DNA from: Bugula neritina
Taxonomy: Eukaryota > Animalia > Bryozoa
Direction: 5' to 3'
NCBI GenBank assembly: GCA_964035545.1
Contig: OZ037773.1
Location: 5,175,751-5,239,750, forward strand
Length of the DNA: 64,000 nucleotides
Shown here: piece after piece, positions 24,188-28,856 of the stretch
Layout of the letters: every line of letters begins with the position of its first letter
How positions within the stretch are numbered: the first letter of the stretch is position 1
The notes under the pieces: model-generated
The model's input: the letters and a program-made list of their open reading frames with translations, nothing else
What the model was told of the DNA's origin: nothing
Database searches by the model: none
Made by a program: the position numbers and the translations under genes

Positions 24188-27100
24188 TTATTTCTCGCAA
24201 ACATGTTTTCGAAATCCAGGAGTGCAAGTGTTGTCATACCAGACGAAGGTCGTGCGCATGATAAGACATGTTCCGAAGTTGTTGGGCCTCCCAGTCTCAA
24301 ATTTACTCATATCTAATGGGTCACCATTATCCCACTTCCATTCGCTGCCAACTTTAGTAGCACCCAACCATAGTTCGTGACTCCATGCTAAAAAGACAAT
24401 TGAAAAATTTAAAAATATATATTGGAATTTTGGGTAGCATGAGCTGCATTCGAAGCTGAGCTAAAAATAAGCCATGTTCAACAAAAGTGTTTGTGCAATG
24501 TATTGAAATTGCTAACAATAATTTTACACCACCTATCTGAATATCAGCCGTGTGATTATAAAAGCAACTAATTTAGTGCACTATACACACTTATAAACTG
24601 AAACAAATGTATGAAGGAAAGAGTACAAATATGCCGTTACATGATAGATTATATTTTACTTCAGTGCAATATATTCTAGCTGCAACCTGTTATAATATAC
24701 CATAAGGTTTCGCACTATCTATATACTCTATAGGCTACTGTCTACTCTATAGTGTATACTCTACACTATCTACTCTATATACTGCCTATACATACTTTAT
24801 GCTGTCTATACTCTATACTCTATACTGTCTACTCTATACTATATAATCTATAGTGTCTTTTGTATGCTATCTACTCTATAGTGTATACTCTACACTATCT
24901 ACTCTACATTATCTACTCTATAATACTGTATATACTCTATGCTATATACTCTACACTATCTACTCTACATTATATACTCTATAATACTGTATACTCTATG
25001 CTATATACTCTACACTATCTACTCTACATTATATACTCTATAATACTGTATACTCTATGCTATATACTCTACATATACTGCCTATACTTTATCTACTCTA
25101 CATTATCTACTCTATAATACTGTATATACTCTATGCTATATACTCTACACTATCTACTCTACATTATCTACTCTATAATACTGTATACTCTATGCTATAT
25201 ACTCTACACTATCTACTCTACATTATCTACTCTATAATACTGTATACTCTATGCTATATACTCTACACTATCTACTCTACATTATCTACTCTATAATACT
25301 GTATACTCTATGCTATATACTCTACACTATCTACTCTACATTATCTACTCTATAATACTGTATACTCTATGCTATATACTCTACACTCTCTATACTCAAC
25401 ATTATCTACTCTATAATACTGTATACTCTATGCTATATACTCTACACTATCTACTCTACATTATCTACTCTATAATACTGTATACTCTATGCTATATACT
25501 CTACACTATCTACTCTACATTATCTACTCTATAATACTGTATACTCTATGCTATATACTCTACACTATCTACTCTACATTATCTACTCTATAATACTGTA
25601 TACTCTATGCTATATACTCTACACTCTCTATACTCAACATTATCTACTCTATAATACTGTATACTCTATGCTATATACTCTACACTATCTACTCTACATT
25701 ATATACTCTATAATACTGTATACTCTATGCTATATACTCTACACTATCTACTCTACATTATCTACTCTATAATACTGTATACTCTATGCTATATACTCTA
25801 CACTATCTACTCTACATTATATACTCTATAATACTGTATACTCTATGCTATATACTCTACACTATCTACTCTACATTATCTACTCTATAATACTGTATAC
25901 TCTATGCTATATACTCTACACTATCTACTCTACATTATCTACTCTATAATACTGTATACTCTATGCTATATACTCTACACTATCTACTCTACATTATCTA
26001 CTCTATAATACTGTATACTCTATGCTATATACTCTACATATACTGCCTATACTTTATACTGTCTACTTTATACTGCCTATTGTATTTTTTAAATGCAAGT
26101 CAATATTGTTTTTTTTAATATATTAATATAGATATATGTTTATACTATAGCAGACTGAAGGAAAAGATAAAAGAGAATGAATAACAGAAAGTGCTGGGTT
26201 TTATAACAGGCTAAAAAGTTAGCTATTTTGTAGTAGCTAGAATCATAGTATCCTAATAAAGAAAACATAATGGAGCTAACATAGCTATGATAATATAGGT
26301 GAAACTGTAATTATTCAACAAGCTTTCCAAGCTCATGTAATGTCCCAACAATTATATTAGTTAGGCTATTAAAAATAGTTCAACAAATAAATGACACACA
26401 AATAAAATGAGGCTTGGTTTGTAAGTGAGCTTTAGCCCACATCCAGATTCTAGGATATGGAAAATCAGCATTTCCTTATAGGATGGAAAGTCAGCATTAA
26501 CTTATAAGCTATAAACCACAACTATCGCAACTTCTGGAGCTTATTTACTATTTGCAGAAGTGTTGGTGTTAATAACAGTCTAACTGTACACCTGATACAC
26601 TCACATGGATCTGAGGCTACTAGCATCTGATACCACTCATAGACCTCTTCAGTGTTTAACATGAGGAGAGAAGCTCCAACAGATTGGCAGTTGGAAACAG
26701 CGGCATTCCTGTTCCCACTTGACGGCCATAACTTGATGCAAGTCTCCTTAACAGGGTTTACTGTCCATCCTGCTTCACATACAATGCTTCTGAGCTCTGC
26801 AACATAACATAAAGCTTTTATCACTTTGGCATACTTCACCAGATTTCAACATATCCCAAATCATTCCAGTACAACCCCAAACTATTCCAGCACACCCTCA
26901 GACTATTCCAGCACACCTAAACTAGTACTCCAGCCCCCCCTCAAAACCACTCCCGCACACCCTATACCAGATTATAGCTCACCCCCAGCATATATTCCTC
27001 TGCAACACGATAAAGGCTGCATCATGGGCAATGATATATATATAGATTGAGATATTATGCTCTCACTCAATGCTCAGCAATGACATTCAGTGATTGAGCT

Positions 27101-28261
27101 CTCTCACCATGGCCACAAACTCAAGCTGCTAGCATTTTGCAAGGCTCGTGACTCCTAGGTGACCCCTAGAGTCACTTGAGCTCTCTGGCTTGAGTTTACA
27201 CACCTTTTAAATATGATTTAGTAGAAACATAAGTTTCTACTATTGCGAAGGTGTGAGCCATGGTACTCTGTTCTGTGCTGACGAGGGGACAAACCCCGAA
27301 ACAGCTGCTGTCCACAGATTGAGGTATATATATATATATATATATATATATATATATATATATATATATATATATATATATATATACTATATTATAGAAA
27401 TAATAAAAGCTCACCTGTGTCATACACATCAGAGTAACCATTATCAGTATCTGATGAGCTCACATAAGTGTTGTACTTGGACCAGAAACATTCCTGAGTA
27501 GAATTCTTATAAGCAAAAGATTTACAGCCAGTATTTCTCAGACAGAGTTTTGCACATCTGGAGACAGAACTGAGTGAAACTGAAGTTGGACTCACTAAAA
27601 CTCGGTCTGTGGTGTTCAGATGTAAGTACAGGTTGTCTATATTACCAGAAACCTAAAAAATGAAACCTGAAATTATTAGTAATATTACCAGTAATTATCA
27701 TACTATAAACCTACATAAATTGATCACCTTCCACCGCCGTGGTCCTGCGCGGTTGGCAGGAAACCTACATAAATTATTATTCTGAAATAATATCTTTTGT
27801 TGTGCTTATATACACACCACACATACACACACACACCCCACACCCCACACCACACACCACACACCCCACACCCCACACCACACACCACACACCACACACC
27901 ACACACCACACACCACACACCCCACACACCACACCACACACCACACACACACACACACACACACACACACACACACACCACACACCACACACCACACACC
28001 ACACACCACACACCACACACCACACACCACACACCACACACCACACACCACACACCACACACCACACACCACACACAAAAATAAAGGTGAAGTCATTCTA
28101 CCTAATTTCACTCCACTAATAGTGTATGAAAAAAATTGTAATTTCTGCATAAAAAGGCAACACTTCAAATCAAATAAAGGATATAATAACCGAGTTACCT
28201 TGCATGCACTGAGTACTAATAGCATCAGTGAAATACGTAGAATACTCAGGGACATCAACAT
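24188..28261 (-). CDS. Lectin gene 5: signal + PAN + C-type lectin (RPN/WYD)
   Basis: Exons 28199-28261 (MLMSLSILRISLMLLVLSACK), 27415-27652, 26605-26796, 24188-24387 (WSHELWLGATK...RPNNFGTC...WYDNTC...HVCEK*). Confidence 0.9.
24715..26075. repeat. Minisatellite, ~51-bp unit built from ~17-bp subunits
   Basis: Tandem CTACTCTACATTATCTACTCTATAATACTGTATACTCTATGCTATATACTCTACACTAT-type units in intron 3 of gene 5. Confidence 0.95.
27053..27323 (+). mobile_element. ~270-bp Penelope-like terminal repeat / retrozyme-like unit, copy 1
   Basis: Highly similar to 28587-28856. Ends in a hammerhead and abuts (TA)n. Lies in intron 2 of gene 5. Confidence 0.65.
27273..27317 (+). ncRNA. Minimal type I hammerhead ribozyme, copy 1
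   Basis: CTGTG-CTGACGA-GGGG-ACAAA-CCCC-GAAA-CAG-CTG-CTG-TC-CACAG. It has the intact CUGANGA/GAAA/GUC core with helices I, II and a short III. Confidence 0.8.
27812..28077. repeat. (CACACAC/CA)n simple repeat
   Basis: Direct inspection. Lies in intron 1 of gene 5. Confidence 0.95.
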
Positions 28262-28586
28262 TTTCTAGTATAGATTTTGAAAGTCAATTTCTAAGAGAAT
28301 TATTATAACACATCAATCTGTCTAAGTGGTGCAGTTCTTTGTAAGTTTTGTTGTTGTTCTACAAAGTAGTATGGAAAAGCTGTCGATATGTAAAAAGTAT
28401 GAAATTATTGATTTTTCAAAAAGAAATCACAGATCCGGAAATTATCCCAATGCAAAGAAGTGAACCCCATATTGCTAGAAATTATATATGTAACTAGATA
28501 AGTGGTATATACATACACACATATATATAAATACATACCGTATTGTATATATAATATATATATATATATATATATATATATATATA

Positions 28587-28856
28587 TATTACGCTCTCAT
28601 TTAATGCTCAGCAATGACATTAAATGATTGAGCACTCTCACCATGGTCACAAACTCAAGCTGCTAGCATTTTGCAATGCTCGTGACTCCTAGGTGACCCC
28701 TAGAGTCACTTGAGCACTCTGGCTTGAGTTTACACACCTTTTAAATATGCTTTAGTAAAACTATAAGTTTTACTATTGCGAAGGTGTGGGCCATGGTACT
28801 CTGTTCTGTGCTGATGAGGGGACAAATCCCGAAACAGCTGCTGTCCACAGATTGAG
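28587..28856 (+). mobile_element. ~270-bp Penelope-like terminal repeat / retrozyme-like unit, copy 2
   Basis: Direct repeat of 27053-27323, embedded between (TA)n tracts just upstream of the gene 5 ATG. Confidence 0.65.
28806..28850 (+). ncRNA. Minimal type I hammerhead ribozyme, copy 2
   Basis: CTGTG-CTGATGA-GGGG-ACAAA-TCCC-GAAA-CAG-CTG-CTG-TC-CACAG. Both differences from copy 1 keep the fold: the variable core position, and G-C to G-U in helix II. Confidence 0.8.

Follow-up and report, generated by a model that had tools for sequence, protein, structure and literature searches.

Two hammerhead-bearing repeats around the first exons of a Bugula neritina lectin gene as probable separate insertions of a young retrozyme family

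Why is a lectin gene flanked by a hammerhead ribozyme motif on each side of its exons 1 and 2? The question arises from a 64,000-nt stretch of the genome of the bryozoan Bugula neritina (contig OZ037773.1, positions 5,175,751 to 5,239,750; referred to as the window, with positions counted from its first nucleotide), in which two direct repeats of about 270 bp enclose the signal peptide and PAN domain exons of a minus-strand gene ('gene 5') in antisense orientation. A first-pass annotation of the window had described the repeats and proposed that a plus-strand transcript would release a 1533-nt RNA carrying the PAN exon, which might act as an antisense regulator or as a vehicle for spreading the exon. 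The evidence assembled here leads to a different answer: in all likelihood, the pair goes back to two separate insertion events of a metazoan retrozyme family of the type without long terminal repeats (non-LTR), a young family that is probably active to this day. That the signal and PAN exons lie between the copies is best read as a coincidence, a by-product of the positions of (TA)n tracts.

Both repeats lie on the plus strand and end in type I hammerheads, as had been described, with the first repeat starting at 27052 (Table 1). They are 272 and 271 nt long and share 93.75% identity; the 17 differences among 272 aligned positions include all subfamily-diagnostic sites. Intron 2 of the lectin gene contains copy 1, antisense to the gene and about 90 nt beyond the exon 2 donor; this copy shares 97.8% identity with the consensus of a 'C' subfamily (27 distinct units) and carries five private substitutions (27068, 27113, 27216, 27256 and 27282). 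Copy 2 is located about 325 nt upstream of the ATG of the gene, also in antisense, and belongs to a 'T' subfamily. It is 100% identical over 271 nt to at least eight other loci on six chromosomes and nearly 100% identical to about 20 more, and because of this full-length identity it is regarded as the master sequence of the T subfamily and as very young. The consensus sequences of the two subfamilies differ at 12-13 sites, and several of these differences are compensatory in the predicted fold (a C-G to U-A replacement in the 5' stem; the loss of a G-C pair in the hairpin at 27220-27240). Since the copies belong to different subfamilies and are only 93.75% identical, they were inserted independently; as judged from their sequences, they are derived neither from each other nor from one composite element. 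In a pairwise comparison, the flanks of the two copies had no sequence in common apart from (TA)n. The copies occupy separate (TA)n tracts, and two independent adjacent insertions into such tracts, which the first-pass annotation had named as an outcome speaking against its own reading, are thus seen directly.

The 35-nt core at the end of each repeat consists of CTGANGA, a 4-bp helix II, GAAA, a short helix III and GTC. This pattern had no match in 100 shuffles of the window, and no hammerhead other than those of the two copies was found with it in the 64 kb. In hammerhead 1, helix I is formed by TCTGTG (27272-27277) and CACAGA (27313-27318), which pair over 6 bp, and is extended beyond an internal loop by 3 bp between CTC (27266-27268) and GAG (27321-27323). 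The core sequence CTGACGA (27278-27284) is followed by helix II (27285-27297), in which GGGG (27285-27288) and CCCC (27294-27297) form 4 bp closed by a 5-nt loop, by GAA (27298-27300) and by helix III (27301-27311), which reads ACAG-CTG-CTGT, has 4 bp and a 3-nt loop and contains the palindrome CAGCTG noted earlier. The term 'minimal', which had been used for these hammerheads, does not strictly apply, given the internal loop of helix I and the 5-nt loop of helix II. Hammerhead 2 has the same layout shifted by 1533 nt, with a U at the free core position N7, a G-U innermost pair in helix II where copy 1 has G-C, and an identical helix III. Both copies possess the conserved positions of the type I core (CTGACGA or CTGATGA, GAA, A...T and C17) and the three-helix topology of this type, in which helix I is open and helices II and III are closed by loops. 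Cleavage is predicted after C27312 and C28845, 1533 nt apart, exactly where the first-pass annotation had placed it. By their appearance, the motifs are genuine members of the type I hammerheads known from the Penelope-like and retrozyme world, and self-cleavage is predicted for them. Thermodynamic calculations gave -15.5 kcal/mol for helix III as an intermolecular duplex, which comprises 10 bp with one U-U mismatch, versus -1.2 kcal/mol for the hairpin, and these modelled energies favour dimer action of the predicted ribozyme. Such a dimeric mode has been described for amphibian retrozymes and for Penelope-like hammerheads (PMC7229834).

A search of the 216-Mb assembly with the hammerhead core, allowing up to two mismatches, returned 533 matches (265 forward and 268 reverse), and a reversed-pattern control gave none in the whole genome; a looser helix II pattern added only two degenerate family members. 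Searches with the whole unit yielded 743-751 first-look candidate matches. The genome search for the 270-bp unit, which had been recommended earlier, uncovered a large family. Both subfamilies and the 533 copies retain every invariant core position and the three helices, helix II differing solely by the change from G-C to G-U. Family members occur as single units, as tandem arrays with a period of 271/272, and as a full unit directly after a 5'-truncated unit. The arrays reach at least five units (e.g., five at C9:3146062-3147420), and many loci consist of single units rather than long arrays, as do both copies in the window. Partial units always end at unit position 272, immediately upstream of a full unit, and most of the sampled insertions are built in this way; copy 1 shows the same rule in miniature, as the 8 nt ahead of it are the last 8 nt of the unit. 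Among 24 distinct insertions sampled outside the T subfamily, (TA)n was found on the 3' side in nearly all and on the 5' side in most. For the unit, whose GC content is 0.43-0.46, the predicted fold is a branched rod of very high stability (-102.5 kcal/mol, z -6.86, none of 200 shuffles as stable), which is retained in both subfamilies. It contains only short reading frames, none of them as long as the unit, and lacks LTRs, a primer binding site (PBS) and a polypurine tract (PPT), as is expected of a non-LTR retrozyme. Neighbours of mixed subfamily and other non-tandem neighbours are also found elsewhere, e.g., a T and a C copy at C2:17429765 and C2:17430191, which are 426 bp apart, and simple density arithmetic suggests that chance alone would give a few such close pairs per genome. 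Two of the five (TA)n clusters in the 64 kb of the window are occupied by retrozymes; from five clusters per 64 kb and about 350 loci, the occupancy of (TA)n tracts can be roughly estimated at a few percent.

Two irregularities were observed at the borders of insertions elsewhere in the genome. At some 5' junctions (L029, L028, L005 and L020), TATATAGG is reiterated three or four times, or the junction reads ...ATTGAGG; in these pieces, TA alternates with the final 3-7 nt of the unit, which looks like repeated abortive copying or template slippage at the 3' end of the unit during target-primed reverse transcription. Short inverted pairs of the unit 3' end lie beside arrays at C5:9208046-9208191 and C2:33418463-33418628 and resemble the inverted 5'-truncated copies described for Penelope-like insertions.

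Is the family transcribed? Four probable RNA runs, each from a different study, contain contigs that cover the unit; the runs comprise 37-50 million letters each, with longest contigs of 13-15 kb, and are transcriptome-like in this respect. The contigs were aligned over copy 1 alone (27036-27326). In three of the four runs, contigs contain junctions at which the alignment goes back by 272 nt, that is, head-to-tail unit junctions; a 272-nt junction of the unit would read ...GATTGAGG joined to TATTATG.... At 27113, 27216, 27256 and 27282, the RNA contigs carry the consensus base and not that of copy 1. It is probable, as far as such contigs can tell, that the family makes head-to-tail unit-length RNA or tandem transcripts. 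The first-pass annotation had assigned the motifs to the Penelope and retrozyme world and had expected dimer action and unit-length forms; this part of its proposal is in line with the helix III energies and the 272-nt junctions, whereas the 1533-nt RNA derived from it is not supported, as discussed below. Contigs longer than 1 kb, found in three studies, pass from an unrelated sequence into the unit, which they follow from 27182 onward (27182-27223); apparently, a host transcript includes a 5'-truncated member of the family that is located at another site in the genome.

Li, Clavereau & Pollet argued in a 2026 preprint that metazoan retrozymes are derived from, and dependent on, Penelope-like elements (10.64898/2026.07.22.740005). 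Within this group, the Hydra clade is characterized by a size of less than 3 kb, a single open reading frame (ORF), the motifs RWK and DKT, a CxCX5C linker, a C-terminal GIY-YIG domain, a hammerhead and insertion into (TA)n (PMC8557442). The search for an autonomous Penelope element proposed with the first-pass annotation led to candidates: a GIY-YIG query taken from this genome gave 422 first-look candidates with open frames of up to 740 aa, often arranged as inverted or tandem pairs. The elements measure about 2.4 kb, have one ORF that encodes about 710 aa and are flanked by (TA)n on both sides (L053), and the RWK, DKT, CxCX5C linker and C-terminal GIY-YIG motifs can be read in the translation of L055:2780-4915. 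More than 2,800 homologues of the candidate ORF, of about 700 aa, were found on contigs of about 2.5 kb; some of them carry PF26215, PF28514, PF01541 or PF00078, RVT_1 being present in some homologues only, and a sister family scores 22.4-23.6 bits on PF01541. Pfam searches with the 711-aa and 560-aa ORFs detected no family at E <=0.01 and no reverse transcriptase, and the only match at E <=10, DUF4889, was judged spurious. As no Pfam family was detected in these ORFs, the assignment to Penelope-like elements draws on motifs, homologues and Atlas look-alikes. The only strong PF01541 match of the genome, C1:24630658-24630858 (L031 1471-1725, minus strand), resembles an exon of a host structure-specific endonuclease of the SLX1 type rather than a transposon; weaker, repeated matches to PF01541 led to the Penelope-like elements. 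Altogether, the genome holds hundreds of intact-looking elements with the features listed for the Hydra clade. Three Penelope-like families each possess a hammerhead in the 3' untranslated region, whose helix III has 2 bp and ends in a palindromic hexaloop (AAUAUU, UAUAUA or AAAUUU), and at several loci (e.g., L030) retrozyme and Penelope-like insertions are found in one and the same (TA)n tract. Based on the shared target, the ribozyme type and this co-occurrence, Hydra-clade Penelope-like elements are likely to mobilise the retrozyme.

The anatomy of the insertions and the published retrozymes suggest the following course of events. Tandem or multimeric transcripts would be cut by the hammerhead, probably as a dimer formed via the palindromic helix III, and a host RNA ligase would circularise the unit-length RNAs. 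A Penelope-like reverse transcriptase with its GIY-YIG endonuclease would then nick (TA)n tracts and copy the circle or multimer by target-primed reverse transcription, thereby producing the observed full unit or array behind a 5'-truncated unit. At the lectin gene, the older copy 1 (C subfamily, about 1.8% diverged) would have entered a (TA)n tract in intron 2, and very recently copy 2 (T subfamily, 0% diverged) would have entered a second tract 325 nt upstream of the start codon. As both copies are antisense to the gene, its pre-mRNA does not contain the ribozyme.

Several observations weigh against this reading. A scan of the whole window detected no Rfam hammerhead at the gathering score, which answers the Rfam check suggested earlier in the negative. 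In E-value mode on a 96-nt stretch, the best match was RAGATH-1-hammerhead (RF03152), with the correct topology but with 15.2 bits, an E-value of 1.6 and a cut-off of 56.3; RF02276 reached 11 bits of the 37 needed, and RF00163 gave no match in E-value-mode scans of 2 kb and of 96 nt. Other Rfam matches (Pestivirus UTR, mir-297 and the like) were rejected as (TA)n artefacts. Furthermore, the minimum-energy fold of the lone 64-nt ribozyme region is a competitor (-18.6 kcal/mol) and not the catalytic fold (-13.2 kcal/mol). The hammerhead varies less among copies than the rest of the unit (0.0066 vs 0.0093), but the copies are so alike that this conservation could reflect the youth of the family alone. 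The RNA status of the runs is an automatic guess, and their contigs show neither strand nor ends, which makes a circle and a tandem transcript indistinguishable. Finally, the unit shares neither sequence similarity nor a common tail with the three sampled Penelope-like families, and BLAST of the unit against Penelope-like loci retrieved only separate retrozyme insertions and a 37-nt fragment; with no shared sequence, the link to the mobiliser comes solely from the shared target, co-occurrence and ribozyme type.

Could the units then be an ordinary repeat, similar to a short interspersed nuclear element or a satellite, in which the hammerhead is a non-functional relic and which spreads independently of cleavage and circles? 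The missing Rfam match, the non-catalytic best fold of the monomer and the high identity of the copies, which keeps core conservation from being evidence of selection as yet, would all suit this explanation, and it has been considered that hammerheads may merely parasitise Penelope-like elements (10.64898/2026.07.22.740005; PMC8557442). It would, however, leave unexplained why the core and the three helices are intact in both subfamilies and 533 copies, and why three unrelated Penelope-like families of this genome keep the same ribozyme type. The architecture of a truncated plus a full unit also fits the copying of a circular or multimeric template, and the 272-nt head-to-tail junctions occur in probable RNA contigs. 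A relic is therefore considered unlikely, although it is the most serious competitor.

More doubtful still is the idea that the pair forms a composite unit resembling an LTR retrozyme, which releases a 1533-nt linear or circular antisense RNA acting as a regulator of the gene or as a vehicle of the PAN exon. Plant LTR retrozymes do use two flanking hammerheads (PMC4918200), and the window offers two intact ribozymes on the same strand, 1533 nt apart, whose identical helices III could pair, around a PAN exon that is common to paralogues at 91-93% identity. That the repeats enclose exons 1 and 2 of gene 5 is borne out by the ATG and donor of exon 1 and by the match of exon 2 to PAN_1 (E 2.3e-10, 40.6 bits, cut-off 21.4). 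The copies, however, belong to different subfamilies and ages, and the interior as a whole (27387-28560) is single-copy in the genome: matches elsewhere are confined to the PAN exon and a CA-rich tract, and the parts that are neither exonic nor microsatellite have no other copy. The paralogous PAN exons at 21150-21413 and 35160-35385, which had been called near-identical, are only 91-92% identical in the window (up to 93% on the same chromosome); their homology is restricted to 27409-27673, i.e., to the exon borders, and a hammerhead pattern scan of the window found no retrozyme near them. No sign was seen of the module having travelled together with retrozyme ends. A transcript of the composite unit would also have to cross (TA)31 and about 275 nt of CA-rich repeat. 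The probable RNA runs contain a share of 0.12-0.24 of the sampled words of 27000-28900 (1901 nt), of which one unit accounts for 0.14, and these word shares suggest that the runs hold unit sequences and little else of this region. With copies from different subfamilies, a single-copy interior and no retrozyme beside the paralogues, the proposal that a 1533-nt RNA carries, regulates or spreads the PAN exon finds no support, and a composite unit is judged very improbable.

A variant of this idea does not require a composite origin. A read-through transcript could mechanistically be cut at both sites, although nothing supports a 1533-nt RNA. In such an accidental 'cargo retrozyme', the two hammerheads, paired by their identical helix III, would cut the occasional plus-strand transcript that runs from copy 1 into copy 2, and ligation would give a 1.5-kb circle antisense to the signal and PAN exons, which might damp the gene or be moved to a new (TA)n tract by the Penelope-like reverse transcriptase. 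This scenario is given marginally less credence than the composite unit; if true, it would be a ribozyme-based route of exon shuffling in an expanding immune-lectin cluster. Deletion by non-allelic homologous recombination between the two repeats, which had also been suggested, is possible. A local duplication or unequal recombination of one insertion, as might be imagined for direct repeats that share their orientation, are separated by 1.5 kb and both adjoin (TA)n, can practically be dismissed, since copy 2 has exact counterparts on six other chromosomes yet differs from copy 1 at 17 of 272 positions, and the two share neither flanks beyond the unit and (TA)n nor private mutations.

Table 1. 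Coordinates of the retrozyme copies, the predicted hammerheads, the enclosed exons and the candidate mobilisers.
Feature	Position	Strand	Remarks
Partial unit, 8 nt (AGATTGAG)	27044..27051	+	3'-terminal remnant of a preceding unit; 5'-truncated unit ahead of copy 1
Retrozyme copy 1	27052..27323	+	272 nt, C subfamily, helix II AAACCCC
Hammerhead 1	27266..27323	+	predicted cleavage between C27312 (C17) and C27313
Core patterns	27278-27312 and 28811-28845	+	one per copy
(TA)31 target tract	27325..27386	.	3' of copy 1
Exon 2 of the lectin gene, PAN domain	27415..27652	-	acceptor AG 27654-27653, donor GT 27414-27413
CA-rich complex microsatellite, intron 1	27800..28077	.	outside the retrozyme
Exon 1 of the lectin gene ('gene 5')	28199..28261	-	ATG at 28261, 21-aa hydrophobic signal-like peptide, donor GT 28198-28197
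(TA)n tract	28555..28589	.	5' of copy 2
Retrozyme copy 2	28586..28856	+	271 nt, T subfamily, helix II AAATCCC
Hammerhead 2	28799..28856	+	predicted cleavage between C28845 and C28846
(TA)60 target tract	28858..28977	.	3' of copy 2
Intact-looking Hydra-clade elements	C3:8396500-8405500 (L053 2808-5200), L054, L055, L056	often inverted pairs	at least three families

Some features of the surroundings deserve mention. The CA-rich repeat of intron 1 (27809-28077; CACAC/CCACA units) has at least 60 look-alike tracts genome-wide with 75-93% identity and is a dispersed complex microsatellite family. In the paralogous gene with the PAN exon at 21150-21413, (TA)n is found at the equivalent intron position (20709-20992) without a retrozyme, an analogue of an 'empty site'. 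The neighbouring minus-strand exons 26522-26839 and 29656-30262 resemble C-type lectin domains (CTLDs) by eye (WxxD...C motifs); one such exon had no Pfam match at E <=1. Probably, the gene encodes a lectin that combines PAN and CTLD domains.

While the locus itself is ordinary, the family provides a clean, apparently active example of the partnership between retrozymes and Penelope-like elements. Owing to its identical copies, its two subfamilies and the (TA)n match with Hydra-clade elements, the B. neritina genome is well suited for testing which reverse transcriptase mobilises animal retrozymes. For the annotation of the lectin cluster, the repeats should be treated as transposon insertions and not as regulatory architecture. 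Copy 2 is recent enough for a presence/absence polymorphism to be likely 325 nt upstream of the start of the gene.

How does the family compare with known systems? The repeats of newt satellite 2 and Schistosoma Sm-alpha, which are scattered or arranged in tandem, measure about 330 nt and contain a type I hammerhead; the newt hammerhead has a weak helix III and acts as a dimer. They differ from the family described here in sequence, host and copy number, and (TA)n targeting is, to our knowledge, not a described hallmark of either. Plant LTR retrozymes, described by Cervera et al. in 2016 (PMC4918200), resemble the arrangement in the window in that two direct repeats with hammerheads flank an interior, which measures about 0.6-1 kb in plants. 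However, the plant elements contain type III hammerheads, true LTRs of the same origin, a PBS and a PPT and a non-coding interior that travels with them, whereas the repeats in the window are of different origin and their interior is a unique segment of a host gene, which sets the pair apart from LTR retrozymes. The candidate mobilisers match the Hydra-clade Penelope-like elements of Craig et al. (2021, PMC8557442) in size, ORF, 3' hammerhead and (TA)n insertion; unlike the Hydra-clade elements of this genome, the retrozyme is non-coding, and its helix III has 4 bp and a CUG loop instead of 2 bp and a palindromic hexaloop. The closest relatives are the metazoan non-LTR retrozymes described by Cervera & de la Pena in 2020 (PMC7229834), whose units likewise measure about 170-400 nt and contain a type I hammerhead, and which also have dimer-to-multimer tandem arrays, a GC content below 50%, a strongly self-paired RNA and, as is probable here too, head-to-tail unit-length RNA forms, and co-exist with hammerhead-bearing Penelope-like elements; with the amphibian members, the family shares the short helix III favouring dimer action. 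The cited descriptions show strict (TA)n targeting and very regular truncated-plus-full insertions less clearly than the present family does, and the many single-unit loci and the two co-existing subfamilies with compensatory differences are further distinctions. The 271/272-nt family is thus a new member of the already known metazoan non-LTR retrozymes.

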